This document shows positions 3,976 through 55,963 of a DNA stretch of 64,000 nucleotides, one piece after another (position 1 is the first letter of the stretch; each line of letters begins with the position of its first letter). Under the pieces are notes generated by a model, which made no database searches, was not told the DNA's origin, and worked only from the letters and a program-made list of their open reading frames with translations. Origin of the DNA: Macrostomum lignano (lineage: Eukaryota); contig NIVC01002229.1 in the NCBI GenBank assembly GCA_002269645.1, positions 1-64,000 on the forward strand, read 5' to 3'. The position numbers were made by a program, and so were the translations under genes.

Positions 3976-4387
3976 GTACCCCATGGCCACGCTGGCCTTC
4001 ACCCGCTGGCTGTATGGCCTTCGCTACCGGGTTAACAACCTGGCGAGGCTCCGGCAGCTGCAGGGCAGCTACGTGCTGGTCTCCAACCACCAGTCCAGCA
4101 TCGACCTCATGGGCGTGGGCCTGCTGTGGCCGTACCAGTGCACCATCGTTGCCAAGAAGTCGCTGATGTTCGCCGGCTGGTTCGGCCTGGCCGCCTGGCT
4201 CTGCGGCTGCGTCTTCGTCTCCAGGGGCCGCCAGTCCGCCCAGGCCGAGATGCGCCGCCTGGCCGCCCGCATGGCCCGGCAGGACGACACCGTGCGAGTG
4301 TGGATTTTCCCCGAGGGCACCCGCGTCTCCGGCGCCGACCTGGGCGACTTCAAGAAGGGCGCCTTCCATCTGGCTGTGCAGGCGCAG
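3976..4387 (+). CDS. AGPAT: 1-acyl-sn-glycerol-3-phosphate acyltransferase (LPAAT), internal exon; 5' part not found in window
   Basis: Motifs SNHQSSID (HxxxxD), VFVSR, IFPEGTR, FKKGAF. Acceptor CACAG ends at 3975; donor CAG|GTGCGG at 4388. Confidence 0.88.
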
Positions 4388-4419
4388 GTGCGGCACCGCG
4401 GGATTCGTTTAGGCCTTTG

Positions 4420-5230
4420 TGGATTAGTTTGAGTCATCGGAATTCATCTGGGTCATTGTGAACTTATCTGGGTCATCGTGGATTCATCTGGGTCATTGTG
4501 AACTCATCTGGGTCATCGTGGATTCATCTGGGTCATCGTGGATTCATCTGGGTCATCGTGGATTCATCTGGGTCATCGTGAATTTATCTGGATCATCGTG
4601 GATTCATCTGGGTCATCGTGGATTCATCTGGGTCATTTTGGATTCATCTGGGTTTTTTTGGATTCATCTGGGTCATCGTGGATTCATCTGGGTCATCGTG
4701 GATTCATCTGGGTCATCGTGGATTCATTCATCTGTGTTATTTTAGATGCTTCTGGGTCATCGTGGATCATGCTTGGGTGCAACCTAGGGATTCACCCGGC
4801 CGTTTCTATTGGCAACACACACACACGTAAGTCGCTATTGGACAGAATAGTAGTCACGTGACTGCTCTCAGCCAATAGCGACTTACATGTGTGTGTTGCC
4901 AATAGAAACGGCCGGGTGATTCCCAAGGTTGCGCATGTATGTCGTGGATTCACAACGGTCATCGTGAACTCATCTGGGTCATCGTGGATTCACTAGGGTC
5001 ATCGTGAACTCATCTGGGTCATCGTGGATTCACAACGGTCATCGTGAACTCATCTGGGTCATCGTGGATTCACAACGGTCATCGTGAACTCATCTGGGTC
5101 ATCGTAGATTCACTAGGGTCATCGTGAACTCATCTGGGTCATCGTGGATTCATCTGGGTCAACTTGAATTCCCCTGGGTAATCCTAGATGCTTCTGGGTC
5201 ATCGCGGATGCTTATGGGTCATCGTGAACT
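4420..5230. repeat. 20-bp intronic minisatellite, interrupted by a MITE
   Basis: Unit GTGGATTCATCTGGGTCATC and variants. Confidence 0.9.
4768..4941. mobile_element. Palindromic hAT-type MITE inserted in the minisatellite
   Basis: Right TIR GTTGCGCATGTATG (4928-4941) is identical to that of the MITE at 15830-16106; left TIR is decayed. 8-bp direct repeat TCGTGGAT on both sides. Interior is a near-perfect palindrome centred on AGTCACGTGACT (4852-4863). Confidence 0.75.
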
Positions 5231-5639
5231 CAAAATCCTATTTTCATTTTCTGAGGCCTGTATAAGACATTGGCACTGCATTGAGAAAGCAGTTAAAACA
5301 GGCATTGAACTGCAGGCCGTGCCGGCCCCACTAGCGATAAGAAATTTGCTTTTTTTTCAACTTTGCTCGCGCGCCAATATCACCCAGCACGTTATCTGCG
5401 AGTAGCTCGGGGGCGTTTGAGAGCAACTGTTCTCTGAGCTGCTGCTGGGGCTGGGCTGTGCGGCATGAGCCCTGCAGCTCGGGCCCTTACAACATGGAAT
5501 TAGACTTCCATGCAGCTATGAGGCTGCCTGACCTAAATTGTATGCCGCCGTGCTGCCTTTTGGACCTTGTGTTTTGTGCCCCTGTGACTGCGTCCTTAAG
5601 CGTGTCTTAATATAGTGCAGATTTTGGTTCACGTTGCTT

Positions 5640-6588: not shown

Positions 6589-8737
6589 CTCAATCAGCAG
6601 GTTACAATAACTTTATTAATCTTGTGCAAGAGAAGCAGAATTTTGTGTCACTTATTAAAACTTGCCGACAGTTACATTACATCATGTACTAAGCGCTTAC
6701 TATGAGTAGTTGTCAGTTGCGAGCTTTACCTGTTAAATAAATTTCCTACAAGTTTTATTTTCAATTCTGTAAATTCCTATTCGGCATTAGCTATTCGTGT
6801 TTAGTCATCTTGCTGGCCCTCATCTCGCCTGTTACATTTTACTATTTAGTAGCCATCATTTTGAGTTCGATCCCATTGGATCTGCTATGCACATTCACTC
6901 GCCTGCATGTGCTTCCCGAGCTGCGCGTGCAATCCAAAGCCCCAGACGCAATTTCGCACATTTTAGCAAAGCGAATAAACTTTTTCTCATTATTTGAAGG
7001 GCCTCTTTCTGATTCACCCAAACTGGGAACTCGTCTTTGTTCTGCGCATTAAAATTCGGTCTTTGTTATTTGTTATGCATTATCGGGGCTACGCTATGAT
7101 GCAGCTGTTCCAGCATTCTGTTCGAGCGGGACAAGAAATACTCAACTAAGAAACAGAGAGCGGCTCCTTCATCACAGAGATGACCAGTACAAACCGCTGC
7201 GCCGTCAAGGCGAGCGGGCACAACACAAGCACATTAGTGGCGTATAACAATAGTAACAGTTATTATATTATTAATTAATAGTAATTATAAGCTTAGACGC
7301 AAATGCAGCTAGCATAACAAAAGTGCAGAGAAGGAACAGTGAGATGGCAGTCTGAAAATATAAAGCAATTATACAGGATCGGAGAAGCTTTGCACTATTG
7401 AATATTGATTAAATAAGCACCTCACCTCGGTCAGTAGTAACTGTAGGTAAGTCCCGCTAGCGCAGAGTTCGATAGGCAAAAAGAATGACAAAATCGCTAT
7501 CCAATAACGCAATAGATCTACTCTTAGTAGCGCACAGGTAAACTATTAGAATAATTTAATAAGTAGATAATTTTACAAAGCAAAACAGAAGCAGAGCTAT
7601 CCGAGGACTCAAAGCGCAACAATTAAGGAAAGTTAAATAAAAAATTAAACACTATATTATTAATTATTATTAAGACTAAGTATTAACTCCATACTTGACG
7701 CAAATATGGCAATGCAGGATTACTGATAGCTGCAGGACACGACTGTTGATTCACTCGCAGACAATTAACATTAATAACAAAAATCATAAATAGTAGGCAT
7801 CCGAGCATGCACACCAGACAGGCTCTGCACTCGCGGCTACGTATAAACAGGATTTGATAAAAAGAAGGAAAAACAACAGACAGGATCGCAGGAAAAGAAA
7901 CACAAAAACGCAAACCAAGCAATAAATCAGACTAACAGGCAGACAGCTGAGCTCGCGGCCACAGTGTGAGCAAAACCTCCTGACGGTGGAATCAACGCGC
8001 AGCATTTAAAAGAGAACAATGAACCCGGAGCAGCAATGACTGCAGTTATTATAGCAACAGGCAAGGGCAGTACAAAACAGACGCAAAGGAAACTAACACA
8101 GAACTCAATTATTAGGTTAAACGAGCTGCAAATTTGCAAAAACTGGGCGCGCACAATTAATGATGATTATGTAGACTCTGTCGCCAAGGCCAGTTGCATA
8201 CAGATATAAGAACTTCAACTGATGCTCAGCAGGCAGGCAGGCCTTTCGCTACCTGCTGTCGGCTCGGTCTTGGCCATAGACAGTGGAAAGCCAGATTTTG
8301 CCTTTAAGGAGAGGCCCATCGAGTGTTTTGGTATCTGTGGCCAAACCAAAGCAGAGAGAAACAAAACACAATAATCAATAGATAATACATGAATATGACG
8401 CTGGAGTATTAGTGAGGGAAAAGGACAGCTAAAGCCTAGTAGTGCAAGAGGGGAAGGGGCAGACGCGTAAAACAAGACGGGTGAATCGCTTTCTAGGAAA
8501 CGGCAAAATCAGTCAGGCAAAAAAAATCGACACAAAAAAACGGCAAAGAAAAAAGCGGCGAACCGGCTTGCGAAGCTGCGGCGGGCCGGCCTCCTCATTA
8601 CCTGAAATTTGAGGGGTCGAGTTGAACTTGGATCGTACTGAGCTACTCAGAGTTGTAGAAGGTGCTGACATTTTAACTTTAATTTAATTTTTAATTTAAA
8701 GATGTACGAATGTTGTCACAATTAATTATTATGAAAT

Positions 8738-9292
8738 TGAGGCCGAAGAAGCTGGAGTCTGATGTAAATTGAGGCCGATGAAGCTGGAGTCTGATGTAAA
8801 TTGAGGCCGATGAAGCTGGAGTCTGATGTAAATTGAGGCCGATGAAGCTGGAGTCTGATGTAAATTGAGGCCGATGAAGCTGGAGTCTGATGTAAATTGA
8901 GGCCGATGAAGCTGGAGTCTGATGTAAATTGAGGCCGATGAAGCTGGAGTCTGATGTAAATTGAGGCCGATGAAGCTGGAGTCTGATGTAAATTGAGGCC
9001 GATGAAGCTGGAGTCTGATGTAAATTGAGGCCGATGAAGCTGGAGTCTGATGTAAATTGAGGCCGATGAAGCTGGAGTCTGATGTAAATTGAGGCCGATG
9101 AAGCTGGAGTCTGATGTAAATTGAGGCCGATGAAGCTGGAGTCTGATGTAAATTGAGGCCGATGAAGCTGGAGTCTGATGTAAATTGAGGCCGATGAAGC
9201 TGGAGTCTGATGTAAATTGAGGCCGATGAAGCTGGAGTCTGATGTAAATTGAGGCCGATGAAGCTGGAGTCTGATGTAAATTGAGGCCGATA
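8738..9292. repeat. 32-bp homogeneous minisatellite, about 17 copies
   Basis: Unit AAATTGAGGCCGATGAAGCTGGAGTCTGATGT, essentially identical copies, downstream of the FUBP stop. Confidence 0.95.
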
Positions 9293-9457
9293 AGTCTTAC
9301 GTGTAAAGTGGGAAACTCATGAAATTTTGAGTTTCCTCTTCAAGCTATTAGATTTTGTGCACATGAAACGCACTTGAAACCGCACTGCTTCCTAGCGGAG
9401 CCCATACTGTTTCCTTCGCCAGCAAGCAGTGCCGGCTTCCAGCGCAAGCAAAATCCC

Positions 9458-14632: not shown

Positions 14633-15829
14633 TATAAACAAATTAATTGACTGTGAAAAAAAAGGTAAAAGCAAAGGTAGGAGGACAAAGATTAAGGCTA
14701 AGTAGAACTGTTATTGTCAATACTTTAGAGGAAAAAAGTATTTTTGGGTATTATAGGTTATACAAATTAGTATTTATTGTTCTCTCAATCTTTTATAACA
14801 ATATAGCAATAGAGTGTGTCTTCTTTGATCTTATAAGACTTTTTTTCAAAGAAAAGAAACAAACTAATAATTTATATATTGGTTGTTATCTGCTTACTTG
14901 AGCCTTTTTGAAAGCAACCAATTGACTTATAAAAATTTGACATGCATATTAATATTTGACTTTTATGCTTGGCATAGCTGATAGCCACACTTGGATAAGT
15001 AGCAAGAAAAGAATGAGATAAAGCAAAAAAGCTGGCAAAAGAAGGAGAGTTGGCAATTGAAGTTTTAGAAGAGGTCAGAAGAGAAGGTGACCAAATCTAC
15101 CATTATAAATTATTTCAAAAAATGACTGCAAACTATGATCTATAATCTAGACTAAAGCTAGCTTTTTCACTTCTTTAATTAATAATAATAATGGATTGAT
15201 AGCATAAATTACACTTGTTTTGACTAGCTTGACTATATCAATAGCTAGCAATATCTTTGAAATAACTTGTGCTTAATCTTAATTACTTCTTTGGCTTATT
15301 GCATAATATTCAATGTTGATATTGGCTACTAGTCACTTTGGCAACAAGACATTTTGACAATGGACACTTTAGCAATAAGACATTTTAGTGACAATCATTT
15401 TGGCATTAATGTTAGGCCATTTCTGCAAATTCTCTAGCATAATTAATTTAGACTCAGACTTTGACCCAAACTAATGCCTTTTTGATATTTGCTAATTTAT
15501 GGACCAGACTATGTATTTTATAATTATAGACTTTAAACAAACTTGAACTTTAATGTGTTAAAATCAATAAAAAGTTCTAATTTGGATATTGGTTTTGGTC
15601 GAAGTCTATATAATATAGTCCATTAATTGGTTAGCAAAATTCTTCAGAATATTTCAATTTCTATTGCCAGCAAAGTGACTTGTTGTTGAAATGACTGATA
15701 GCTGGCCAGTTATATAATCATAATCATAGTTGATATCATAGATATCATAGTTATCATTACACAATTATAATTGATAACATTTTTATGATAGCTAATATAC
15801 TTAATATAATTATATTCTATAACTTGTTT

Positions 15830-16106
15830 CATACATGCGCAACCCCCCTGATTTACACTGGCCATGCGACTTACTTTTTGACCAAAAATGCGACTTACCT
15901 GTGAAAGAAACCCTAGAGCAACATTAAAGAAATTTTGGGTAAACGGCAGGAGTAACTATGACTGTCTTTTATGGGCTAAATGCCTCGTCATCTAATTAGT
16001 ACTACGTCTGTATTCTTTGGGGTGGGCATTTTTGCAACATACCCCTGGTCCACCACAATTTACAGTGGCCAGATCAGCCAGGTCGGCCAGCAGTTGCGCA
16101 TGTATG
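15830..16106. mobile_element. hAT-type MITE carrying a 28S rDNA-derived segment (copy 1)
   Basis: Perfect 14-bp TIR CATACATGCGCAAC; TSD ACTTGTTT/ACTTGTAT (7/8). 15937-16000 matches the conserved 28S sequence GGGTAAACGGCGGGAG...TCTAATTAGT at 55/64. Confidence 0.85.
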
Positions 16107-16131
16107 ACTTGTATCACATTTGCTCTATAAA

Positions 16132-18409
16132 TAGGCACTTCAGTGAGAAAATTAAATTTCAGAAATTGTTATAGGCTGCTATTTCACTAGATAGATCTTA
16201 CTTTCCCATTTCCAAAATGGCCAAACTTTAGTGATTTGGTTGAGTAATAAGGAAACTACAGCTATTTTAGTAACCCCGATTTGTGCCTTTAGCCAATGGA
16301 ATTTTTACATTACGGTTTGTGATCATTTTTGGCCAAAAAGTTGGCTTTTTGTCTTTGAACACTTGTAATTAATTTTCTAGCCAACCAAAATGACTGTGCT
16401 TGGTGTCATTTTGTTCAGTTTTTTAGTGTTAATTGTATGAATTATATATTTGAAACAAGTAATTGAAACAGGATGGGTGTATGAAATTTTGACTATTTTA
16501 ACCAGATACGCAATGATTGCAATTTTAAAAATACAATAGCATCTGTTCTGCTTGCTTAATTTATACAAGGCTAGTGTCATTTTGTTCAGGTTTTTACCTA
16601 CTATAATACTATTCTACTTCTTGCCCTAAATTTTTAATGCATGACAGACACCCCAACTGCAATGTAATGTGCTGTACAGGCTTTGCGCATGGGTTTATTA
16701 AAAAACGGTTTTGCCTATCGTGTTCAGCATAGCAGAATTAGTTAAATGACACAGAGAACTAGTTTGCCGGAAGGCAGAGTCTCACAAAAAACACGAAATA
16801 CACGTTTCAATGGGTATTTTACATGTAAACGTATCAAAAAAAGAAACCTCCACAAAATTTTTGCGCCTATAGCTATTGGCAAGTGGTTTTTTTTACTGTG
16901 CTTGTATTGTCAATAGGTAATGAAAAATATAAAGAGAAACAATGCAGGAAAAGGATTTCATGGAAAATTTTGGATTTGAAATTTTGCATAGAGCCATATG
17001 GGCATTAAAAGAAAAAAAAAATTTTTTTTAACACCAGAAAAATGTTTCTAAATTATCCCTTTACACTATAAAACCTTTGTTTCCATTATAAGAAACACAT
17101 TGCAGCTAAGAAAAAGCATTTTCTGAACCACTGTTTTTTTATTCATTTTGGCTTCAATTTTATATTCCTCCTAAAAAATGGTCAACTTTAAAAATAGACA
17201 GTGCAAAAAGTATAACAAAGCTAGACTTGCAGTTGGTGTCATTTGAAAGAGCTCCTTTTTACCTTTTAAATGCATACTTTACTTTCATCCTGGCTTCTAT
17301 AGTTTCTTTAAAATCGCCCTTGAAAAATTGGACTTTTTTCTTACTTTTTTGCCATTGGCACGCACTTCTTATAACTCACTGAAGTCCCTATCTAAAGTAT
17401 AAATAATAAATTGAATAGTAAAAATAAAAAAGATGCCATGTTTTAGTTACATTATATTGGTTTAATAAAACATCAAACTAGACTTGATGCATTAGTTAAT
17501 TAAAACAATATTGCTAAAATAGTATAGGCATTTTAAAAAAATAGATACAAACAACATAAAGTGTAATTTATAAATGTAATGTATTAAAATCTAGCAGTTC
17601 ATTAAAATTTTTGAAATATCTGTTTTCAGATTTTGAGCCTTTGATATTTTTTTTTCTTTTACTTCTACTTCTATATTTGTATATAGATATTTGTAATTAA
17701 AAAGTGTGAGAGTTGGTGAGTAAAATACCCATTGAAACGTGTATTTCGTGTTTTTTGTGAGACTCTGCCTTCCGGCAAACTAGTTCTCTGTGTCATTTAA
17801 CTAATTCTGCTATGCTGAACACGATAGGCAAAACCGTTTTTTAATAAACCCATGCGCAAAGCCTGTACAGCACATTACATTGCAGTTGGGGTGTCTGTCA
17901 TGCATTAAAAATTTAGGGCAAGAAGTAGAATAGTATTATAGTAGGTAAAAACCTGAACAAAATGACACTAGCCTTGTATAAATTAAGCAAGCAGAACAGA
18001 TGCTATTGTATTTTAAAATTGCAATCATTGCGTATCTGGTTAAAATAGTCAAAATTTCATACACCCATCCTGTTTCAATTACTTGTTTCAAATATATAAT
18101 TCATACAATTAACACTAAAAAACTGAACAAAATGACACCAAGCACAGTCATTTTGGTTGGCTAGAAAATTAATTACAAGTGTTCAAAGACAAAAAGCCAA
18201 CTTTTTGGCCAAAAATGATCACAAACCGTAATGTAAAAATTCCATTGGCTAAAGGCACAAATCGGGGTTACTAAAATAGCTGTAGTTTCCTTATTACTCA
18301 ACCAAATCACTAAAGTTTGGCCATTTTGGAAATGGGAAAGTAAGATCTATCTAGTGAAATAGCAGCCTATAACAATTTCTGAAATTTAATTTTCTCACTG
18401 AAGTGCCTA
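16132..18409. mobile_element. Large foldback-like non-autonomous DNA element with about 690-bp near-identical inverted arms
   Basis: 16132-16821 is the reverse complement of 17721-18409 (one 1-bp indel noticed). Ends TA|GGCACTT...AAGTGCC|TA. 900-bp AT-rich spacer without a substantial ORF. Confidence 0.9.
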
Positions 18410-19711: not shown

Positions 19712-20587
19712 TTAGAATTCACAGTACTGAGGTAGCTCCCTGTAGAACGGCCAACCGATCTGCGCGAAGCACCAGCGCAACTCGATGTTCAGCAACTGGC
19801 GCTGAGCTGGTCGGGCGTCGCTCCGAAGGGTCTGCTGTAGCCGTTCAGCGACCTCCTGGAGCAGCGCCACTGCCTCCAGGTGGGTGAACTGTTCGCGCAG
19901 GACTCGCAAATGCGGCCAGACCTGGGATCTCTGCGGAAGAGCTTCGTCGAGTCTTAGAAAGGCGATTCTCATCAAGTACTGATGGATGCCGTGGCGCGGG
20001 CGTTCCACCTCGGCGCCTCTGGCCTCTATCAGTTGGCGGACTACAGCTCGGTGGTCTTGAGGCGGGCCTTGCTGTGGTGGACGCGCAGGAGCATTCGGGC
20101 GGGATGGCCGAGATCTTCTCCCAGAAGGCGGCGCCTCCGCAGGAATCGCCATCTGAGCAGAGCGGCCGCAAGCGCCTCCAGCTCGAATCACGCACGACTT
20201 GACCGGGGTGGCCGCCTGGCGTTCTAGTAGGGCGGCCCTCTTCCTTTCTGGCCCATTGTCCTGACTGGCGGCGGGAGCTGGAGAGCTCGGTCTCTGCCGC
20301 TTGGAAGCTGAGTCTCCACCAGGGGGCCTCGGTCGAGTCGGCTGTCTCAACGGAGCCTCGATCTCCTGGCGCTCTCGCGGATCTCGCTCTTGCTGTTCGC
20401 GATGTTCTCGCTCTCGCCTTTCGCGTTCTTCTCGCTCTCGCCTCTCGCGTTCTTCTCGCTCTCGCCTCTCGCGTTCTTCTTGCTCTTCTTGCTGTTGTTG
20501 CTCCGGTTGCTGCTCGTCACTCTCTAGCAGAGCTTGAAGAAATGAATCGATATCGTCGTTGTTGTCCATTACGATTTCTTCGCACAA
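19712..20587 (-). CDS. Orphan accessory ORF of the LTR element (291 aa; E/R-rich helix, basic NLS-like motifs)
   Basis: Intact GC-rich ORF in the env position; ERRERE repeats, KRQR and RKR motifs; TATAAAT about 85 nt upstream. Confidence 0.65.
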   Translation of the reverse strand: MCEEIVMDNNDDIDSFLQALLESDEQQPEQQQQEEQEERERREREERERREREERERREREHREQQERDPRERQEIEAPLRQPTRPRPPGGDSASKRQRPSSPAPAASQDNGPERKRAALLERQAATPVKSCVIRAGGACGRSAQMAIPAEAPPSGRRSRPSRPNAPARPPQQGPPQDHRAVVRQLIEARGAEVERPRHGIHQYLMRIAFLRLDEALPQRSQVWPHLRVLREQFTHLEAVALLQEVAERLQQTLRSDARPAQRQLLNIELRWCFAQIGWPFYRELPQYCEF

Positions 20588-20990
20588 TTCTCTGTATAGG
20601 TCTTTGCAGAGGTCTCGGAACCGTTCTTCGGATGTGTGAACTATGGGAGCCTGCTAGCGGTCAGGGAGTTTGTATTTATAGGCTGGCGGCCGAAAAGCTG
20701 GACCGCATCATTGTGTTCCACGCGGGCCTCGAGTGGGGGGTGCTCGGGTTGGCAGATTTGACACTTCGATTTTTATAGATTTTCTTTAGATTTTTATAAC
20801 TTTTTTATTTTTCGAGATTTTTTTCTTGAGTAATATGTCATATGAAAGCTTACATTTGGCAGAATAATATAGTGTTTTCAGATTTGTTCTATGTACAACA
20901 TGTCAATTTCTATAGGCAAATAACTATTATTAATATGAAATTTTAACTAATTTACACTGGTTTCAATGGCAATTCGCTGACGTCATCACC

Positions 20991-21990
20991 CTATTGTTCC
21001 AAATATCGCGCGTAGCGCCTTCGGGGCACGAATCCGTTCACACCTTCTCCTTGCTGAGTCACTCTATCGCCTCGTGGTCTCAAATTATACCTTTCTACTG
21101 GCTGAGCTTCCTCCTCTAACTCTATTGCTCCTTCCTCTTCTGATGGCTCATCTGAGTCAGTCGCTCTCTCTGTATTCTCACTGTTCAATTCTTCATTTCC
21201 TTCGTTTTCACTCTGCGAATTCGGATCTGCGAATACTCTCCATTGAATTCTGTTTTCTTCGTCTGAGCTTTTCTCCTCTAAAATTTGAACTTCTGGAATT
21301 CTAACTTCTTTTTGTCTATGGCAAATTCTTTTCTTCGGCTTCGGCTGTTCTTTCTTCTTAGTTGGCACTGTTGCTGGTTTTAAATTATTATTAATTTCCT
21401 CTGGTAAATCAATTTCGGATTTCGGCACTGGAGTCAGATTATTACTGTTTTTCTTCGAACAATTTTGCAAATTCTCACAGCTTCTCTTCGAAATCTCATC
21501 TTCATTTCATCTCATCTCAACTCAACAACTTCTCGACTCAATATCTCAACTCGACCCTGACCTCTCGAAAGCTTCTCTGCTGAACTCATGCCAGCTACAG
21601 CTCTACTGTCACGGGTCCTACAACTCTCAACTCTCAATTCTCCTTTCACTGTTTCAGCTTGGCCTCGTCAGTAGAATCATAGAGATTCTGTATTAATCTG
21701 CACTTTAGGCCTTACTGCCCTTCCTTTCCTGCATGGCCTGACTCTCTGAACCTTTTTTGGCTCTTCTGAAAGCGTCATCGGCCTCTTCTTTCTGCCTTTG
21801 GTCAATCTGCAATAGGTCAGTATACAACTGTCCGTGCATCATGCCAATCTCTGCAATCCAATCTCTTCGACAATTTTCTTCGCACAATTTGCACAATCTT
21901 CTCAGTATCATCTTCTCGTCAACTTCTCTGAGTAAAATAATCTTCCTTCAATGTTTTCAGTCCGAAATTGCAGTTCCCTGGCTTTCCTAA
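20991..21990 (-). pseudogene. Probable relic of the pol/integrase C-terminal region
   Basis: RYNLRPR motif near the end of ORF 21470-20991, typical of gypsy pol tails; ILRRLCKLCEENCRRDW resembles a post-catalytic integrase helix. No DDE or RT motifs. Confidence 0.35.
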
Positions 21991-22279
21991 ATAAGTTTCT
22001 TAGTAAAACGGCCCTTCCAGGGTCAAACGGCCCTTTTAAGGTCATCTAGTTAAAACGGTCCTTTTGAGGGTTACCTCCTAAATTTTTAGCTATTTAATGA
22101 CTTTTATTTACTTTAGACGGCTTACTTGGTGAGTACATTGCAATGTGCAGATGAAATACTTCTTAAACAAATATTTTTGGGATTTTTCTAACTTTTATTC
22201 GTTTTTATATTTTTGCATATATATTTGAAACATATTTACAAAAAGCTTTTCAGAATCGCGCTCCTATGTACGAGTCTTC

Positions 22280-22855
22280 TTAAGGTGGCTTCTGCTGAGC
22301 ATGCCGGTTGAACCTGATTCGGCACTGGTGTCCTGCCTGTGGCCTCATAGGTCCTGGTTGATCACAGAAGAAACAGTGACCCGGTTTTGGCTCCGGTCTG
22401 GTTCCACTGAATCGGTGCCTCTTCCAATTCGGCATTGGTCGGGGTGTCTGCGGTACTGTCTTAGTCTCTAGGCTGATGTTGGTGAAAATTACAGTTAGAG
22501 TGACTAGGCACTCCATCAGCGCTTCCATGCCCTTCTTCTGTCTCTGTTCCTCACTCTCTCCGTACTCTTCAATAATCCTTTGGCGGATGTACTGATACTT
22601 GAAGTCTTCTTTCCTATTGCTCAGTCTGCGCTTGACTCTCTCTGGGATGTTTAGATTCGCGAATAACTCTTTCTTGCACTCTTCCTCACTGAGCTTCTTA
22701 TTCCTACAGTGCTGCTCAAAGGTGATCAACCACTTGCGAATATCTTCGCCAGGGGTGTACTTCTCGAATCTTTCTTCTATTGTCACTTTCCCTAGACAGT
22801 CTCGCAGTTGTTCTGCCAGCATAGCAATGGCGTCATTAGCCTGATTCTGATTCAT
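22280..22855 (-). CDS. Gag-like ORF (191 aa) with a degenerate zinc knuckle
   Basis: First ORF after the PBS; FEKYTPGEDIRKWLITFEQHC resembles a retrotransposon gag N-terminus; CFFCDQPG knuckle remnant. Confidence 0.7.
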   Translation of the reverse strand: MNQNQANDAIAMLAEQLRDCLGKVTIEERFEKYTPGEDIRKWLITFEQHCRNKKLSEEECKKELFANLNIPERVKRRLSNRKEDFKYQYIRQRIIEEYGESEEQRQKKGMEALMECLVTLTVIFTNISLETKTVPQTPRPMPNWKRHRFSGTRPEPKPGHCFFCDQPGPMRPQAGHQCRIRFNRHAQQKPP

Positions 22856-27640: not shown

Positions 27641-28428
27641 GTGATTTAAAAACCAGCCAAAAGGTGCTACCGAGCCGTTCCTGACTTCAACTTCAAGAAT
27701 TTTCAAGTTTTACAATTTTGAACTGCTTTACTCCAAATAATCTCGAGCATAATAATGGAACTGTAGCAAAAAGGTTATAAGGGCCGTCAGAATCTCTCGT
27801 GTTTGAGTTCGAGCCTCCCCCAGCAATTAAATGTTTTCTCCATTAAGAAGCCCGTCGTGCCGAGCTCGTTAATGGCAGTTAAATCTGTTACAAGAAGCCC
27901 GCCACCCCGCTTCAACAGATTTTTCAACTCCGAGCTCGAACAATATCGAAAGCAACAGAGCCGTGGAGGGTGCAACAGCTCAGAGTCATAGAGCTCGCGG
28001 TGATGGAGGGCGGGGCTGGCAGCTGAGAAAATTGCCGCCTTCAGCTCACAGGTTACGCAACCGGAGTCGGCGACCCCCCCCCCCGCCTGTCAAGCATGCC
28101 TATCCCAGCCTCAAATTATTATCTGCTTTTGAGTTCTCGAGAATTTTGAGCTCACTCGATTGTAGCCTCACACTTTCTCCGCCTTCTGCTTTTCTATTTA
28201 AAAAAATGTTCACTCCACCACATAACTGCATTCTCGAAGTCTCCCCTGTCCCCTGGGAGCCGGGAAACCCCATCAGCTCGGTTGTCAACGCTTCAACAAA
28301 AGCAGACTGCTTTCCTAGAAAGCAAATCGAGGGCTCGAGTCGGCGAAATCTGGGAGCAGGAGTGCCCGATTGTCGCTGACCGCCGGGGCGTGACGGGGCG
28401 GAGGGGCTCGCGTGCGGGGTCTGCCTGG

Positions 28429-29226
<798 letters not shown>

Positions 29227-30119
29227 GCCCTCAGCCGACCCGTCGCCAGCAGATGTCTCCCAGCGCCATGCCGGCATCAGCGGCCGCCGATTGAATTCGG
29301 AAATCGAGTCAGCCGCCGCTTCGAGTTTGGTGCCGCGATTTTTCTGGCTGGCCTTCAGCAGCGGCAGTCGGAATTCCCCAAGGCCAGGCCGGCTGCGCCC
29401 TGCAGATAGACAATTTCATCAGAAACTCATCTGCCCGTGGCCGCGCCCGGCCCCGCTGCAGCTCGCTGGCAAATTTCTTGGTCGAACAGTTTCGCTAAAC
29501 ACCGCCCCCCCCCGCCCCCAGTTCAATTTGGCGCCAGCCCCGGCTCAGCCGGGTCCAAAATCCCCTGGCTCTCGCCTTTAATCTTAATTGTGTCCCAGCC
29601 CATCACCACCTGAGTCTGGGGAGATCTTCCCATTCTCCAACCTGCCCCAGCTCCCAAATCCGCCTTAGTAGATGAGTTCGAGCTCAGGTCTCATCCTCTC
29701 TGCAGCCCCTCGCTGTGCCAGCCTCCCTGCTTCATCCCGTGGCTGCACGTGAATTAATTTGATCTTATTGATGATCTCTGATTCGCTGCTCGCTCCCGTA
29801 ATCTGCCATTAAATGGACAGTAATAAAGTTTTCCTTCTAATCCGCTCGGAGCTCCGGCCAAATCCCAGCGACCCGAGGCCTTTTCTACCTGAGAGGGGAT
29901 TTGCAAATGTCATCATCCAATCTGCCCACCCTGAGCCCCGCCCGCCCCGGGATTTCAATCCCCCCCGCTGCTGAGTCACGGCAGCGGCCTCGGGTCCGCG
30001 GTGGCGGTGAATGTTCGCGGCTGCGGTGCTCCAGCGGCTCAGCGGCTCGGATCGATGGACTCGGACAGCACCTGGGATTTGAGAATGTTGGGGTTGCCTG
30101 AGGAGGACGCGGATACAGG

Positions 30120-30242
30120 CCTCTGTCAGCCTCTGCTCTCCTCTATCTGCCTCTGTCCGCCTCTGTCCGCTTCTGTCCACTTTTGTCCGCTTCTGTCCGC
30201 TTCTGTCCGCCTCTGTCCGCTTCTGTCTGCCTCTGTCCGTGT
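30120..30242. repeat. 10-bp repeat (CTCTGTCCGC/TTCTGTCCGC)
   Basis: Direct inspection. Confidence 0.8.
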
Positions 30243-30267
30243 CTGGCTTCCTCTGCTTGTCAACACT

Positions 30268-31204
30268 GTAGCTTCACAGGCAGTGGAGTAGCTTGATAGC
30301 CAGTGGAGTAGCTTAATAGGCAGTGAGTGGAGTAGCTTCACAGGCAGTGGAGTAGCTTCACAGGCAGTGGAGTAGCTTAATAGGCAGTGGAGTAGCTTCA
30401 CAGGCAGTGGAGTAGCTTAATAGGCAGTGGAGTAGCTTAATAGGCAGTGGAGTAGCTTCACAGGCAGTGGAGTAGCTTAATAGGCAGTGGAGTAGCTTAA
30501 TAGGCAGTGGAGTAGCTTCACAGGCAGTGGAGTAGCTTAATAGGCAGTGAGTGGAGTAGCTTCACAGGCAGTGGAGTAGCTTCACAGGCAGTGGAGTAGC
30601 TTCATAGGCAGTGGAGTAGCTTCACAGGCAGTGGAGTAGCTTAATAGGCAGTGGAGTAGCTTAATAGGCAGTGGAGTAGCTTCACAGGCAGTGGAGTAGC
30701 TTAATAGGCAGTGGAGTAGCTTCACAGGCAGTGGAGTAGCTTAATAGGCAGTGGAGTAGCTTCACAGGCAGTGGAGTAGCTTCACAGGCAGTGGAGTAGC
30801 TTCACAGGCAGTGGAGTAGCTTCACAGGCAGTGGAGTAGCTTCACAGGCAGTGGAGTAGCTTCACAGGCAGTGGAGTAGCTTCACAGGCAGTGGAGTAGC
30901 TTCACAGGCAGTGGAGTAGCTTCACAGGCAGTGGAGTAGCTTCACAGCCAGTGGAGTAGCTTCACAGGCAGTGGAGTAGCTTCACAGGCAGTGGAGTAGC
31001 TTCACAGGCAGTGGAGTAGCTTCACAGGCAGTGGAGTAGCTTCACAGGCAGTGGAGTAGCTTCACAGCCAGTGGAGTAGCTTCACAGCCAGTGGAGTAGC
31101 TTCACAGGCAGTGGAGTAGCTTCACAGGCAGTGGAGTAGCTTCACAGGCAGTGGAGTAGCTTCACAGGCAGTGGAGTAGCTTCACAGGCAGTGGAGTAGC
31201 TTCA
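30268..31204. repeat. 20-bp minisatellite, about 45 copies, two main variants
   Basis: GCAGTGGAGTAGCTTCACAG and GCAGTGGAGTAGCTTAATAG. Confidence 0.95.
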
Positions 31205-35624: not shown

Positions 35625-38237
35625 CTGTCTGGCAGTCAGCTGTACCGCAGCCTAGCAGACTCTCAACTTGAGTGTCCGACAGAAACTGAGCATCCACAAC
35701 CCGCGCTGCGCACCTGCGCACACAGCACGCACTGTATAGACAGCCAGGCCCATCCCACCTATGCGCAATTCACCTGTAAGCCCGCTGCACCCGTGAACTG
35801 GCATGCTAGCGGGGCCTCGACCCCTGAGTCTGTACACTCCACTCTATTCAATCAGCTTTTCCTGTGAAATAAAAGCAGAAGCAATACTAATTGCTGCACC
35901 AAGAGGCCCGAGTTATTCGGTGTGAAGTGGCCGCCTTGAGCACTCAAGAGTTGAGAAAGCTCAGCAGGGCTGCAACCGATGGCCTCATTGCTAAAAACAC
36001 AAAAACTGCTTCCGTGACCGGCCGCCCCTGAGAGGCGAGCAGCTTTATTGAATGGAATGAATTGTTTCTCATTAGCTTCATCTCATTCCCAGCTTCCCCT
36101 CAGCGCTGAGTGGAGCAGCGGGGAACCCAAAACAAAGCCTGGCGAGTCTGAGCTCAATCGCTAATGAAGGGCTGCTGTTTAACACGCATTAATGACGAGG
36201 CGTCACTCACCGTGGCTCGGGAATAAACAGTGATTAGCGGGCAAATAGTTTTGAGTAGAAAATCACTTTTCCCCAATCAAGCCGGGGATTTCCGGGCCCC
36301 GCGGCTTTCACTGCGCGGCCAATTAACGAACGGACCGGCGCGGAGAAACCCTCGACTGAGCCGCGGGGTCGCGGGGCCGCCCACCTCAACAATTAATTGG
36401 GAGCAGGGTCCCCCTGATTCCCGAGCTTGCTCGAGCTCGTCTCGGTTGAGTTGCCACCACAGTTTCCCATTGTGAGACGGTGAACGGGGGCGCCAATCAC
36501 CCCCTGGCACGTGAAGAGGCGGATCCCAATTGAGAGCAAAAACTGCCCATTGTTTAATTTTTTTGCCAACTGAATTTTAGGCCACCTTGAGCACTTCGGT
36601 AGTTGCTCGATAGGATTACTTCTCCCAGACCCTGCGACTTAGGCGACTTAACAGGCATAGGGGAAGTTTTTCTCTCTTGCTTCTCGATCCCCTTAGTCCT
36701 TGCGAGGCGTCCTTGGCAACGCGAGGCGCAATGGGGCCGAGATGAGGCGGACGGGAGTGGATGAGGCAGGGGCTGCCAGCCTCCCAAGGCATCGAATGAT
36801 CCGGCGATGTGAAAATGAAATTAGGCCGCTAATATAATTTATTGATTTATTTATTCATTTACTTCGCCTCCTCCGCGCGGCTTAGCGGGCGGGGGCGGGG
36901 GCTGGCGGTCCGAGCGGAGATGGGCAGCGGGGGTGACGGTAATTCGAAGCGACTTACACGCGGCGCATAAGCCGACAATAATGCGTAATTAACTCTATGA
37001 AAAATTCATTGCGGTGACTGACTTAAGTCGGCGTGTGCAGCAGCAGCTAGCAGCAGCGGGGACTTCGCTGCAGTCCGCGTCCCCCGAGTCGCACAGCAGG
37101 AGTTGCTGCCGGAGGGGGCCGCTGCAGCTCGGTATTAGGCCCCAGCTTCATCAGCTTAAGGCTCGGCCATGTTAACTGGGAACTTTTTAGCGATGAAGAG
37201 GCACAGTATAGCTGAGTCCGACTCGGGCTATTGAGCTTTAAAACGCAATTTAAACAGGTTTGTTTGGTACGGGGAGACCTCGAATTAACCGTGTGAATAA
37301 TTGATTCTATTTTTTACATGTATCTTTAAAACAATAAATACTGTTTTAATACATGAAATAAATGTTTTATACATGTAAACTGTAGACTGTAAACAGTACA
37401 TGTATAAACTGTACTAAATTGTTGCGGCTTTTTACAGTCGTACAATAATACCGTTAGTGTAAGCAAACAATGAACTGTCTATTGTCTATGGATTGTCAAT
37501 GGACATTTGGGGCTCGCCTTAGTACGACTTTCGACGCTTGTAAGAGCCGATCGCTAGTGAGCTCAACTTCTCTCACTGCTGACAATTGCGGCCGGGCCGC
37601 TGCAGTAAAAAATATACCTTTTGTCAAACCTAATCAGTTGTTGACGTCGCGTTATTCAAAGCCTATTGAATGTAAACTAAATGTTTTTGTCTTAAACTTA
37701 AACTTTGTCCAAAAAGCCTGCGTGCTGGCCCCACAAACTTTCTAAAGAAGTTCATGCACCCATGCCTACTCGCAAGTAGTAAAGTTAAAGCAATATAAAT
37801 ATCAAATGTACATGTAAAAGCGTGGCTTCATGTAAAAGAATCTAGTCGCAACCGCGAGTGGCGACACAAACGAAAACTTACATGTGTATATAAGCTGTCG
37901 GCCTTAACTCACTCAACAACTCACTCTGCCAGGTGGAGGGGGCATTGCAGTGTACACATCATCGATCACCCTGCAGGCTAGATACATACATGTATCTAAG
38001 GGTCAATTTTATGCAAAAAATATTTCAATCGACTAACACAAAAAATGACAACCATAAATATACGTGCGTAAATAAATATACGAGTATAAGAGTAAATAAC
38101 CACAGTATAAAACTGTTTTACGTGTGGTCCTTGCATGTGTTGTGTGCTAGTGTGCGCTTGCACTGTTGAGCGATCTACTCAGCCCTCAGTGCGGGTGCAC
38201 TCGTCATTGCACCTTCCTCACATGCGTGTACCCCCCG

Positions 38238-41821: not shown

Positions 41822-43369
41822 ACGCACTGCAAAAGCTCTGGCCGCCCGCTCTGCCTCGATTCATGTCTGTGGTTTGTAATCACCGTTCTCTGAAGAAAGA
41901 AAACAGTTGAGTGTTCGACCTTACGCTCACTTACTGAAGTCATGCAGTCCGGCCAGCGGACTGAAGCGATATCATATCTCGATCAGGCTCGTCCGCTGCT
42001 GAAGAGAGTCTCTGCATGCTATAGCAAGTTTGATCAGCAGGCCGAGTCACAACCAGTACACATGTTATAAAAAGATTGTACCTGTGACTCGCAAAAGTAA
42101 AATAAAGAGAATCTACAACTTTTTAAGACCATTTTTATCAATCAAGCACCAAGGACGAACTCAAGCACACACTGCAGATGGCATGCAGGTTCTTTCAGCA
42201 AAAAATTAGTGGAATGAACGGGCGGCCGGGCTGGCCGGACCTGGTTGTAAAAACGGAAATCCTTCCAAATAGAAATAGTTCATGCTTTTGCTTTGATCTG
42301 AATACACCATAGGCGTAGGAACAAAGGGGGGGGCGTGGGGCGATATGCCCCCTCTCACTTTTGAAACTGCGCCAATGGATAATACATATGAATAATATAA
42401 ATACAAGTTTTAACTTGACTGGAAGTTGTGCATTTTTTATGCGTTAGCTCCGAAACCGAAAGCAATAATCCTCGAAAAACATTCTGGGCGAGCTTTAAAT
42501 CTTACGGATTTAAAGTTGCATAGCCGTTTTTTACTTCTAATAAAATCGGCTTTTTTAAAAAGCGTGGCTGCGAAAAACTAAATCGTTTTATAGTTAATTG
42601 TTCCTCCCAACATGAATTTGAGTTACAATAATTTTGTGTAAAACACTGGTAGGAATTAGCATCTAAATGCATAGACCATCAAATTGTTTTGACATACCCA
42701 GACACAGTTTGCCAATAATGACAACTGATTGATGTTTGTTAGCCTAGTAGTAGGTCTAGTGATTTTAACTATTAAAATTTGATTTTAACTAGGCAAATAA
42801 AAAGCAAAAAAATAACCACTTGTCTTAATGTATTTAAATCTTCTATATAATATATATACCTAAATTTTATACAATGTTGTAATTAAATATTGAATAGGGT
42901 TGGACTTGGAGTAAAAAATATACTAGAGTATAATTTAAAATTCTATGCATTGCAGTAGACTAGAATAATCGGCATAGTTCTAGTTCACTGCGTTAAATTA
43001 TTTCGCTCTCTATTCAAGGGTAGGGGTTTGGAATATAACAATGTAAACTAGAACTATGCCGAATAATCTTATTTATAATAAATATAGTACTAGGCCTATG
43101 GTTTATTTAATAAATGATATAGATTATATCAATAAATTTTTTTTGAATTTTGGTAGGCCTAAAATATACTTTTGAGTTTTTAATTTGAAAATCAAAGATT
43201 TTTAATTTAATTAGTTACCAAGTCAGTTCATAGCCAATAGCTTAGGTTATTATGAATGGAGTACTTATAGGCATGGCGACTGTGTCTATAATATTTGAGC
43301 TTATGGGCATGGCAATAATCATTGATTTAAAATGCCTGTTCTATAGGGCTTTCTCTCAAGCAATTGGTG

Positions 43370-43430
43370 GCTCAGTGAATATGTCAATTGCCTTGTGATT
43401 TTGAGTAGCAGGGGTTTGAATCCCCAAGGC
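43370..43430 (+). pseudogene. Decayed tRNA-like head (tRNA pseudogene or SINE 5' end)
   Basis: GGTGGCTCAGTG...GGGGTTTGAATCCCC with A/B-box spacing. Confidence 0.35.
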
Positions 43431-43748
43431 TTGGAGATTTTTTAATTTGAAATTTTTTAGGAAATAGAATTTTTTTGCCTTGAATTTTTTCAAGTTTTTA
43501 AATAAAGTAAAAAACTAAATTAAAATAAATTAAATTAATTTTTTTAATAAAAGTAACACTTAATCTTAAAGTGTGGCTGATATGTATCAAAAGAATATTT
43601 CTTTTTCATATATAATTGCGGCCGCACTTTTTTAAGATTTCGTGATACTCTTAAAAATTTAATTTAATTTTTAAAAACTTTCAAGTTAAAAAACTCCCCG
43701 ACAACTTTTCTCTTTTTTCATCTGATCAATGATTGTATACATGGCATC

Positions 43749-44022
43749 CCCTATTGCAGCGCATGGCTTAAGTACGCCAGACGCCTACACAACCTGCGCC
43801 ACGCTGTGAAATGACTTACCTGTGAAAGAAACCCTAAAGCAAAATTAACGCAGTTTTGGGTAAACGGCAGGAGTAACTATGACTGTCTTATCAAGCCTAA
43901 ATGCCTCGGCATCTAATTAGTACCGCGCCATACTAATCGCCGCACGCCGTACGCGCCGCGCCGCGCCGTATTAGATCTGCGCTGGACGCCGTCCACCAAA
44001 ATGCCCATGCGCTGCAATCAGG
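43749..44022. mobile_element. MITE of a second TIR family carrying the same 28S-derived segment (copy 2)
   Basis: TIR CCCTATTGCAGCGCATGG / CCATGCGCTGCAATCAGG (16/18); 8-bp TSD ATGGCATC; 43858-43921 matches 28S at 54/64. Confidence 0.8.
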
Positions 44023-44059
44023 ATGGCATCTATGCCTTTAAGCTCCAATATTAAAGACA

Positions 44060-44365
44060 TGGCCACCCACCGTGTCTCTTAAGTGTAAACCCAGTCAATA
44101 TAACAACATGGCCACCCACCATGCCTCTAAGTATGAACCCAGTGAATATTAATAACATGGCTGCCATGCAAGTTTTATTGACATGGCAACCATGTCTCTA
44201 ATAGTGACTAGGTCTATACTTATAGACACAGTAGCCATGTCTATAATGCAGAAACTTAGAGACATGGTGGCCGTGTCTATAAGTATAGACCTAGTCACTA
44301 TTAGAGACATGGCCACCGTGTCTATAAGTTTTTGCATTATAGACATGGTCACTGTGTCTCTAAGT
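44060..44365. repeat. Direct and inverted GACATGGCCACCGTGTCT repeat cluster with a long hairpin
   Basis: 44190-44229 is the exact reverse complement of 44273-44312. Confidence 0.8.
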
Positions 44366-45015
44366 ATGGCATATTATGAACAATTATATCATATGAACAG
44401 TTATGACATAATAAGCCCTATTGTCAAGAAGGTGTCCACCATAGTCAAGGTGGTGGTAGATTTCACGCAAAATTGCGGCATACACAGAGGGTTTTTTTGG
44501 CACACACAGCATAAATGGCGCAGAAGAAAATTTATTGTGATTTGTGCACTGTATGTGCACATACAATGCACAAAGCATCTTACCTAGCACAGTCTATACT
44601 GTATTAACTTCTTAGTTCACATGTAAAAGATGAAACACAATGACAAACTTGCTTTTTAAAATTTAAAATGGCATGAAAAGGTTTTTTAAATTATAGTTAA
44701 CATTACATGTATACCTGAAGAAAAATTACAACAATCATTGTTTGTATATTATGTTTGCAATTTATAATATATGTACATTATAACAAAAAAGTGTTTTGTC
44801 TGATACTCCTTTAAAACAATTACATGAAATTCTGGTACTTAAATTCTTTAAAAATTCTTTTAAATCATATAGAATTTTTTTTACTCTCATATCACTTCTT
44901 AACCGCTACCCTTTTTATCAAAATATGCTGCCTTTTGTTACAAAACCTAAAGGTACTTATACCAATTTTCAAGTATCATTGTATAGCACCCTTTTATTCA
45001 GATACAACTTTTTAA

Positions 45016-49178: not shown

Positions 49179-49297
49179 TTGGCACATACGCTCGTAATCG
49201 TTGGAGCTTAATTAAGATTAGAGATTAGTCTGTCTATTCTCACTGCTTGACCAGCTGCCCGCTACTCGCATCCAATGTTGCAGAGCTCTGCGCAGAG

Positions 49298-53796: not shown

Positions 53797-54581
53797 AAAA
53801 TATCTCTATTGCAGCCAAGGTCTAAACTTAACTATGCTAGATACTTCCTTTTTTTATGCTATATTATAACAGTGTGCCAGATTATACCTGCACTAATGAG
53901 GCCAATTTGTATTAAATGCTATCTACAAAAATGGCCATTGGGCATCGGCTATAATAGGGAAAATGTTAGGGTCTAATAAAAAGTATTTAGGCAAGATGAT
54001 CATAGGCTTTTCATATTACCAATTCCAAACAAGAATCAGTTCAAAGCTTTTCATTTTGTCTATTCCATTTTTAGAATTGGTTCTAGAACAGTGATTTGAT
54101 TCTAGAACTTGGTTTAAGAAATTTTCTTGATCTATTGTTGTATTTCTATGGAAAGAACAGGATGAATTTAAAATAACATTTTAAACATTTCAAAATGAAT
54201 ACTTAAAACTCAAAAGTATAGGCCACATTTTAGATAATAATATTTTTATCTTTTGAGTAGTAATATGGTTAAATAAAAACAGAAAAATTGACACTTTTCA
54301 TTTTCCTACCAATTCTAATTCTGGAATTGATTTTTATGAAAAGCCTAATATGCAAATTTAGTAAAGTGCAATCAAATATTAAAAATTAAATGTATGAAAT
54401 GTTTTCTAAAAAAAAACAAAAGGAAATTTAAAGAATAGATAATAGGTAAATAATAGAAAAAAGAATTAAAAAAATACTAGGAAAAAGCATTAAAAGATAA
54501 AAAATAAATTGAAAAAAGATAAAAGGTAAAAAAGCCTAAGAAAACAGAATATGATAGAGGAAAAGTGAAAGAAAAAAGGTT

Positions 54582-55403
54582 TGTAACAGTGGTTATTCCT
54601 CTGTCTTTATGAACAATCCCAGCGTTACTACCAAAGTTGTAACAGGGGTAACTTCTATCCCTACAAATGATTCCACAGCTATTACTAAAGTTGTCACAGG
54701 GCTTAATTTTCTGTCTTTATAAATGTTGGTAGCTGCCACCAAGACAATATTCTATTAATAAATTATGAGTTTATTAATCTTAGAATAAGTCTAAGAAATG
54801 GTTCTTGGAATTAGTCTGAGTATATATCTAAGTACTTATCTGAGTATTTATCTGAGCATAAGTCTTAGTACTTGGTCTGTGAATTATTCTTAGAATACTA
54901 TTTAGCCTTTACAAGTATCGTTCTCCTGTTATTCCAGTAGCATTTACTGTTATTCTGGCCTGAGCGGTATATTGGCTTACTGGTATATGTATTGCATGTA
55001 CTTCCAATCCTGGGCATTACTGAGATCAGAGGGTGACAGCCTCCGGTTATTCTTTCATGTATCAATTTAGGATCTACTTCGTAGTCTCTTACTACTTCTA
55101 CTTCTCAGTAGTATATACTGTATGTGTTCTCTGCCACTTCACTTCTCTTCCTGCAAATGAATAACTCGGAAAACAATCTTCAATAATGTTTACTTGGAAC
55201 TCTTACTATTCCCTATTAACTGTCTTGTTATCGAACCGCGATGCACAAGGTTGGTCTCTCCTCTGCCAAAAATGCTTCTATTTATACTAAAATTTACTGC
55301 TAGTTTAATCAAAAATTAGTTTGCGTAAAATATTATGAAAAATATGTGTATTATAACAAATGTTTTTTCCTAGATTCGGCATGCATTCAAAATGAGTTAT
55401 ACA
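54582..55403 (-). mobile_element. Solo LTR of a family related to the 18553 element (right boundary uncertain)
   Basis: Shared blocks TGT.ACAG..GTTATTCCTCTGTCTTT, TGGCCTGAGCGGT..CTTACTGGTATATGTA, CTGGGC.TTAC.GAGAT.AGAGGGT.ACAGC, and the same PBS/terminus units. Confidence 0.7.
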
Positions 55404-55674
55404 GTTATCAATTTTATAATAAAAGAATCGGTAGGGGCCCTGCATAGGTTAGAAAACATATACCAAGCAACTCAAATTGCTATTTTGAAGTTTTATATAA
55501 AGGTTTTTATATGACAATTTATATACAATAATCCAATAATAGTATTTTTATATATTATAATTATATGTAACTTATTAACATAATAATAATAATTGATTAC
55601 ACCTGCCCTAATTAAGCCAGATATGCAACCAATAGCTTAGCTGCATCTACAAGTATTGCATAGCACATCTGAAG

Positions 55675-55963
55675 CATACATGCGTAACCTCAAAAATTCG
55701 GTTGGCTGTGGGACTTAGTTTTAACAAAAATGCGATGTAGTTTTTGGCCAAAAATGCAACTTTTGTAATATTTAATACATAAAAAAAGCCTAAAACAAAA
55801 TTAACGCAACTTTGGGTAAACGGCGGGAGTAACTGAAACTGTCTTACTAAGCAAAAATGCCTCGTCAGCTACTTAGTACTACTATTTTTTTGGGTGGGCA
55901 TTTTTGCAACTTCCTTGGTTGGCTGCCAGATCGGCCGACTCAGCCGACTGTTGCGCATATATG
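55675..55963. mobile_element. hAT-type MITE carrying the 28S-derived segment (copy 3)
   Basis: TIR CATACATGCGTAAC / GTTGCGCATATATG; perfect 8-bp TSD ATCTGAAG; 55814-55877 matches 28S at 50/64. Confidence 0.85.

Follow-up and report, generated by a model that had tools for sequence, protein, structure and literature searches.

A 28S rDNA-derived segment with an altered centre in hAT-like MITEs of the flatworm Macrostomum lignano

Introduction

How did short cut-and-paste transposons come to carry a piece of 28S rDNA whose divergence from the ribosomal sequence is focused on the R2 nick site? Three dispersed miniature elements (MITEs) of the flatworm Macrostomum lignano raise this question. More than half of the M. 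lignano genome is repetitive, and simple and tandem repeats account for 15%. The sequenced line, DV1, has extra chromosome copies, so large blocks of sequence occur two to three times.

The 28S region concerned is a target of unrelated mobile elements. The N-terminal ZnF/Myb domains of R2 bind upstream of the nick (bioRxiv 10.1101/2024.11.11.623112), and the homing endonuclease I-PpoI recognizes the site CTCTCTTAAGGTAGC (PMC2602781). Transposable elements are documented to gain stretches of rDNA through modular reshuffling, in most cases with no advantage to themselves; the review of the interplay between rDNA and transposable elements that describes this names no DNA-transposon MITE with a fragment of the 28S core (PMC10946416). 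The sequences of the MITE modules described here were not found in any paper in the literature.

Materials and Methods

The window is the whole stretch of DNA analyzed, bases 1–64,000 of M. lignano contig NIVC01002229.1 (assembly GCA_002269645.1; COPS2 gene record). The Mlig_3_7 assembly of this flatworm has the accession NIVC00000000, and its NCBI annotation leaves out transcripts that overlap repeats. Duplicated COPS2 regions on NIVC01000020.1 (locus L004) and NIVC01001504.1 (locus L005) were compared with the window. In total, COPS2 and ACY1 homeologs gave access to about 60 kb of further host sequence (L004–L008).

The reference 64-mer covers 28S helices H69–H71 and corresponds to positions 2244–2307 of the Rfam LSU_rRNA_eukarya consensus. 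The host 28S was taken as canonical at this 64-mer from the universal conservation of the segment (Rfam consensus and general knowledge). The Rfam gathering score of LSU_rRNA_eukarya is 50, and the 25–27-bit cmscan matches reported here were obtained with relaxed thresholds. The sample for the 28S module comprises three independent copies and one ortholog of copy 3, at L004.

Results

Three 28S-like sites lie in the window, all on the forward strand (Table 1). Their positions and ungapped identities of 55, 54, and 50 of 64 nucleotides had been predicted from the sequence and were reproduced. Each half of the 28S segment occurs three times in the window, with zero occurrences expected (100 shuffles). 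Beyond the 64-mer, similarity to 28S is not significant by shuffling on either side (p 0.09–0.96); for copy 2, cmscan draws a weak collinear 28S alignment eight bases further downstream, to about 43,929. Because the LSU similarity scores lie below the gathering score, the segments are derived fragments and not rRNA genes. No RNA families were detected in the whole window at Rfam gathering scores. A structured RNA or snoRNA-like guide was considered and dropped, with fold z-scores of −1.1 to +1.4 on both strands. Neither these z-scores nor the 25–27-bit Rfam matches, below the gathering score, point to an rRNA-like structured RNA, in agreement with the predicted absence of an rRNA-structural constraint.

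Table 1. Positions of the MITEs, target site duplications (TSDs), terminal inverted repeats (TIRs), and 28S-derived segments in the window
Feature	Position	Strand	Length	Details
Sibling MITE without 28S module	4768..4941	+	174 bp	Palindromic body; right end is family A GTTGCGCATGTATG
TSD of sibling MITE	4760–4767 and 4942–4949		8 bp	TCGTGGAT twice, perfect
MITE copy 1, family A	15830..16106	+	277 bp	TIRs 14–15 nt, perfect, CATACATGCGCAAC / GTTGCGCATGTATG
TSD of copy 1	15822–15829 and 16107–16114		8 bp	ACTTGTTT / ACTTGTAT
Family A subterminal repeats	15864..15898	+		ATGCGACTTAC twice, CAAAAATGC once; inverted CAAAAATGC at 16026–16034
28S-derived segment, copy 1	15937..16000	+	64 nt	55/64; centre TTATGGGCT; cmscan LSU_rRNA_eukarya 26.8 bits, E 1.7e-4
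MITE copy 2, family B	43749..44022	+	274 bp	Ends CCCTATTGCAGCGCATGG / CCATGCGCTGCAATCAGG, unlike family A
TSD of copy 2	43741–43748 and 44023–44030		8 bp	ATGGCATC twice
28S-derived segment, copy 2	43858..43921	+	64 nt	54/64; centre ATCAAGCCT; cmscan 25.2 bits, E 3.2e-4
MITE copy 3, family A	55675..55963	+	289 bp	TIRs 14–15 nt, CATACATGCGTAAC / GTTGCGCATATATG
TSD of copy 3	55667–55674 and 55964–55971		8 bp	ATCTGAAG twice, perfect
28S-derived segment, copy 3	55814..55877	+	64 nt	50/64; centre ACTAAGCAA; no cmscan match

Mismatches to 28S accumulate in a 9-nt centre, AAGGTAGCC, which holds seven of them in copy 1, seven in copy 2, and eight in copy 3, in line with the pile-up that the original prediction had described. 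Position 28 is changed from C to G (CTCTC>CTGTC) in all copies, also as predicted. The functional R2 core TTAAGG/TAGCC (slash, nick) was not found at the nick in any copy, 7–8 of the 9 nucleotides of AAGGTAGCC being changed in each. The 15-bp I-PpoI site is likewise not present in any of them, as every copy has the C>G change at its third base and 6–7 changes in AAGGTAGC. The upstream region putatively bound by R2 ZnF/Myb is kept, with 1–3 mismatches in the 27 nt of block 1, the part of the 64-mer upstream of the centre.

Comparison among copies gives the same picture. Copies 1 and 2 differ at 1/55 flanking positions and 5/9 centre positions (Fisher p = 9e-5), and copies 1 and 3 differ at 6/55 and 8/9 (Fisher p = 5e-6). 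Among the three copies, divergence is focused on the centre and not uniform, and the focus is statistically real. Within family A, the blocks on both sides of the centre are identical at 49/55 positions (89%) versus 70/83 ungapped arm positions (84%). The 64-mer is free of indels in every copy, whereas indels are numerous in the arms of copies 1 and 3; the fixed length hints at a constraint on length or spacing.

The centres had been described as differently scrambled in each copy. They do differ, but they form two types only: AYYAAGCCW in copies 2 and 3 and the L004 ortholog, and TTATGGGCT in copy 1. Copies 2 and 3 have 5/9 centre positions in common, or 6/9 when the L004 ortholog stands in for copy 3. 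Copy 3 and its L004 ortholog differ at 1/9 centre and 5/55 flanking positions, which matches the approximately 5% divergence of the surrounding DNA. Since this pair differs at a single centre position, the centre is inherited and was not scrambled at each site, and the same pair rules out in-place hypermutation. A hAT excision footprint was also rejected as the origin of the centre, because it would add about 5–8 nt and the length is unchanged. In block 1 of copy 3 (55835–55838), a clustered three-base change relative to L004 20979–20982 (TATG in L004, TGAA in copy 3) is an example of multi-nucleotide mutation in the M. lignano genome.

The predicted identity of the elements as MITEs is upheld by TIRs, 8-bp TSDs, empty sites, and an excision footprint. 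The four elements are 174–289 bp in length and have no coding capacity, with stop-to-stop frames of only 28–66 codons, and copies 2 and 3 vary in presence at orthologous sites. The insertions occupy intergenic stretches close to COPS2, ACY1, and FUBP-like genes. A Pokey-like piggyBac identity does not fit the 8-bp TSDs, which are not TTAA, or the intergenic insertions. The ends are common to copies 1 and 3 only; copy 2 is a member of another MITE family, with a TIR that comprises a 14-nt perfect inverted repeat inside an 18-nt imperfect one. Copies 1 and 2 nevertheless have a 111-nt internal stretch in common that is 90% identical, consisting of about 45 nt that start at a GACTTAC motif and, after them, the 28S-like part. 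The 46 aligned nucleotides upstream differ at 5/46, the arms are unalignable, and the TIRs differ. The sibling MITE without the 28S module sits within a 20-nt tandem-repeat array (4322–5332).

The duplicated loci record recent mobility. Copy 2 is absent from both: L004 has a clean empty site with ATGGCATC once, and L005 has a 13-nt footprint of two partial TSDs (ATGGCAT/GGCATC) at about 7000–7012, between flanks that are 99% identical to the window. Such a footprint is a typical excision signature. Copy 3 has a clean empty site in L005 and is present, partly deleted, in L004. These empty sites and the footprint identify the MITEs as real cut-and-paste elements that were mobile after recent duplications.

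The deletion in L004 (at 20958, relative to window 54992–55815) spans 824 bp with a 3-nt GTA microhomology. It removed the left 141 bp of the copy-3 ortholog and 683 bp of flank, and its breakpoint lies at the start of 28S block 1. L004 is the older homeolog at the copy-2 site, where it carries the clean empty site. Around copy 2 (42500–45000), identity to the window is 99% for L005 and 83–92% for L004; around copy 3 (54500–57000), it is 94–96% for L004 and about 85–92% for L005. The switch could be due to recombination or conversion between duplicated chromosomes, or to an assembly chimera.

The 8-bp TSDs, found in all four elements, suggest the hAT superfamily. The TIRs do not begin with the hAT consensus YARNG (CAG/TAG...); the ends are CATAC... 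in family A and CCCTA.../CCTGA... in family B. No transposase ORF was found in the 64-kb window or in the approximately 60 kb of extra host DNA. "hAT-like" is the most that can be said, since the TIR starts are off-consensus, no transposase was found, and the P superfamily also makes 8-bp TSDs.

Subterminal repeats of family A (Table 1) are putative transposase-binding repeats. Nine CAAAAATGC sites occur in the 64-kb window, six of them inside copies 1 and 3. For GCGACTTAC, four of five sites are inside copy 1 and the sibling MITE, which bears a GCGACTTAC / GTAAGTCGC subterminal motif. The fifth is isolated in GC-rich sequence (…GAAGCGACTTACACGCGGCGCATAAGCC…) at 36949–36957 and may be the remnant of a related element. 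The idea that ACTTACCTG and ATTTTGG are U1-snRNA-like or SL-RNA-like was rejected, because GCGACTTAC is a repeated subterminal motif that also occurs in the module-less sibling and has no Rfam match.

The subterminal motif overlaps the 28S-like segment. The 3′ part of the centre with the start of block 2, the part downstream of the centre (C[T/A]AAATGCC), resembles the repeated motif CAAAAATGC, and in copy 3 an exact CAAAAATGC spans part of the centre and the block 2 start. AAATGCC at the block 2 start is a near copy of CAAAAATGC / CCAAAATGCC, the subterminal motif of both families. Also in copy 3, GCAAAAATGCC (55851–55861) matches the subterminal motif exactly, and together with 55897–55907 in the right arm it makes up a perfect inverted repeat of 11 nt. 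The 7-mer AAACGGC, common to block 1 and the sibling MITE, was set aside as compatible with chance by our own estimate.

Further copies of the module were sought. The approximately 60 kb of L004–L008 contains no new independent copy and one orthologous copy. An exact-pattern scan for the MITE variant GGAGTAACTATGACTGTCTT, with or without N9 AAATGCC, returned one chance 20-mer on a viral contig, and the scan for GGAGTAACTATGACTGTCTT of metagenome and prokaryote genome contigs returned no match. None of five MITE-internal peptides was found in the protein collection. A route to more M. lignano DNA through transposon proteins (the gag-like ORF and the L004 reverse-transcriptase ORF, both described below) yielded no close relatives on record.

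The neighbouring DNA contains other repeats and mobile-element remains. Two inverted arrays of a 15-nt tandem repeat (45100–45600 and 46530–47115), with arms of up to 236 nt that are 93% complementary, form a foldback-like structure upstream of COPS2. Arrays with 8-, 20-, 22-, and 16/32-nt units occupy 28284–29400, 30201–31100, 59329–59988, 62943–63602, and 8606–9419. The long arrays fit the reported 15% content of simple and tandem repeats. An aminoacylase-1-like gene (PAA59806.1; 56686–60434) has exons at 56686–57135, 59171–59425, and 59919–60434, and its first intron is full of 45-nt tandem repeats (57271–59005). A C2H2 zinc-finger gene made of 84-nt tandem repeats lies at 49247–50878 in the window, 11927–13576 in L004, and 11920–12942 in L005. 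Its annotated products of 530, 212, and 327 amino acids across the three duplicated loci indicate rapid gain and loss of finger units. On the reverse strand, three ORFs at 19712–22855 include a gag-like CCHC protein (22280–22855), whose sole detectable homolog is an M. lignano CCHC-domain protein with 39% identity; they are probably an old retroelement remnant. In L004, positions 14950–17180 encode a reverse transcriptase (RVT_1, E 1.8e-25) followed by a 236-amino-acid ORF, outside the L004 gene calls. The best database relatives of this reverse transcriptase are only 27–39% identical.

Discussion

The 28S fragment was probably captured once, since all copies share the 64-nt length and the C>G change at position 28. 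Module shuffling is indicated by the 111 nt that copies 1 and 2 share between unlike arms and TIRs, and by a family-A-ended MITE that has no module. The characters group the copies in conflicting ways: TIRs unite copies 1 and 3, positions 12 and 41 unite copies 1 and 2, and the centre and upstream part unite copies 2 and 3. These incompatible groupings point to exchange between MITE lineages, as would be expected if non-allelic copies repair excision gaps. One or two events in transposing lineages probably account for the altered centre.

We tentatively favour the reading that the segment is a passenger 28S fragment with an incidentally rewritten centre, carried in hAT-like MITEs. A piece of host 28S rDNA of about 65–75 bp (H69–H71) would have been captured once into a short cut-and-paste element, as filler DNA or by template switching during excision-gap repair. 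It would then have spread by transposition and, along with about 45 bp of MITE sequence next to it, have entered a second family with different ends. A few complex multi-nucleotide events in transposing lineages could have rewritten the middle 9 nt into the two centre types, each of which would then be stably inherited per insertion, and the 3′ half of the centre may have merged with the subterminal motif CAAAAATGC. The 28S-like DNA would then be a passenger, or at the very most a cis element that the transposon has co-opted, and would not act as a working rRNA piece, an R2 or I-PpoI site, or a decoy. This reading is the simplest given the documented reshuffling of rDNA pieces, the inheritance of the centre, the module-less sibling, and the motif overlap. 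Under it, the hotspot at the nick site is a coincidence, and one that is inflated because this stretch is among the most recognisable in 28S. A neutral passenger does not predict the steep gradient between copies 1 and 2, from 1/55 differences in the blocks through 5/46 upstream to 5/9 in the centre, with unalignable arms.

Two rivals are kept alive by the near-identical blocks, the lack of indels, and the hotspot at the nick site. One, which we consider rather unlikely, is that the MITE once carried a full target of an R2-type or homing endonuclease; copies with an intact core would have been hit and disabled by R2 or cleaved and misrepaired, and only lineages with a destroyed core would have kept transposing. 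It accounts for the concentration of mismatches on AAGG/TAGCC (7–8/9, in both centre types), and an intact centre would plausibly have been a target because the upstream R2-binding region is intact; Platyhelminthes, Schistosoma among them, are reported to have R2. Gapped alignments resemble small indels at the nick: cmscan aligns copy 1 with a TA deletion after GG, and the type-A centre fits a replacement of AGGT by 3 nt. Yet all copies have kept their net length, an unusual outcome for scars of end joining, and the collected copies include neither a canonical centre nor an R2 insertion. The two centre types also share a derived frame (G at 38 and C at 40 in 3/4 copies), which leaves one or two events at most and makes chance possible. 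The other rival, unlikely in our estimation, makes the two 28S blocks a constrained cis element, such as extra sites for transposase or a host factor that raise transposition, with the 9 nt as a free spacer of fixed length and the R2 site irrelevant. Blocks identical at 54/55 positions between families with unalignable arms and TIRs, a 64-mer without indels next to arms with many, and the likeness of AAATGCC at the block 2 start to CAAAAATGC / CCAAAATGCC of both families are as this reading would have it, and both module-bearing families moved recently. Within family A, however, conservation of the blocks (89%) does not clearly exceed that of the ungapped arm positions (84%), the sibling MITE transposed without the module, and a 7-mer shared by block and arm is at about chance level (roughly 0.75 expected by our own estimate); the sample is four sequences.

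It is doubtful that selection maintains the blocks for a continuing interaction with a 28S-directed protein (the R2 ZnF/Myb domains or another rDNA-binding factor) while the core has been ablated to avoid cutting or invasion. Equally doubtful is the corollary that the module is a disarmed copy of another transposon's target, arising from conflict between MITE and R2 or serving as a binding platform. The original prediction went further and saw in the blocks uncleavable sites that would sequester a protein directed at rDNA (a homing endonuclease, or R2 through its ZnF/Myb domains) or would anchor the MITE in nucleolar chromatin. Although the sequence stays close to canonical in the upstream R2-binding region and in the 23 nt downstream while the cleavage core is lost, we consider such a role very improbable. 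The centre is stable between orthologs (1/9), inserted copies decay in place with their blocks (copy 3 versus L004), and the sibling MITE dispenses with the module. Neither a benefit to the MITE nor a mechanism of selection is evident, and the review of rDNA and transposable elements lists nothing alike, the word "decoy" occurring in it zero times (PMC10946416).

Whichever reading holds, these MITEs add a flatworm case to the short list of mobile elements with captured rDNA, and they are the first case of a conserved 28S core piece inside a cut-and-paste MITE. Recently active MITEs, with an excision footprint, in a transgenesis model bear on genome stability and on insertional tools in M. lignano. 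If loss of the cut site was selected, the module would record how two unrelated mobile elements came into conflict at a single target, and it would offer natural variants of the R2 target that are bound but not cut, relevant to the engineering of R2 for gene insertion.

Among known systems, hAT MITEs such as Mar in Drosophila and BniHAT in Brassica are alike in size (about 170–290 bp), lack of coding capacity, short TIRs, 8-bp TSDs, subterminal repeats, insertion polymorphism, and an excision footprint of two partial TSDs. The M. lignano TIRs (CATACATGCG..., CCCTATTGCAG...) differ from these in departing from YARNG, and no autonomous partner was seen in the window or the approximately 60 kb of extra DNA. 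Capture of host fragments is known from mosaic MITEs, from Pack-MULE-like transduplication, and from filler DNA in deletion derivatives of Ac/Ds and P. These share with the M. lignano elements a host-derived internal filler and the same module in families with different termini; here, the piece is ribosomal and very short, and its mechanism of capture is one that we infer.

Transposable elements that carry rDNA include SINEs with 5S promoters, the Cassandra and Ajax TRIMs, mammalian SINE28, and Pokey with its IGS repeats (PMC10946416, Table 2). In these, too, an rDNA fragment was gained by modular reshuffling and spread through the genome. Their fragments are a Pol III promoter, the 28S 3′ end, or spacer repeats, whereas the M. 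lignano cut-and-paste MITE carries about 65 bp of 28S core (H69–H71), of which a use to the element is not evident. Relative to the R2 and I-PpoI site in 28S, the flanks, of 27 nt on the upstream side and 23 nt on the downstream side, are 89–100% identical to canonical, but the core CTCTCTTAAGGTAGC has 7–8 changes in AAGGTAGCC plus the upstream C>G, and the MITE sites lie outside rDNA without an inserted R2 or intron. Pokey and mPok, piggyBac elements of Daphnia, are likewise DNA transposons or MITEs tied to the same 28S region and dispersed in the genome. Pokey inserts into the 28S TTAA and duplicates TTAA, whereas the M. lignano MITEs contain the 28S fragment themselves and lie, between 8-bp TSDs, in ordinary intergenic DNA.
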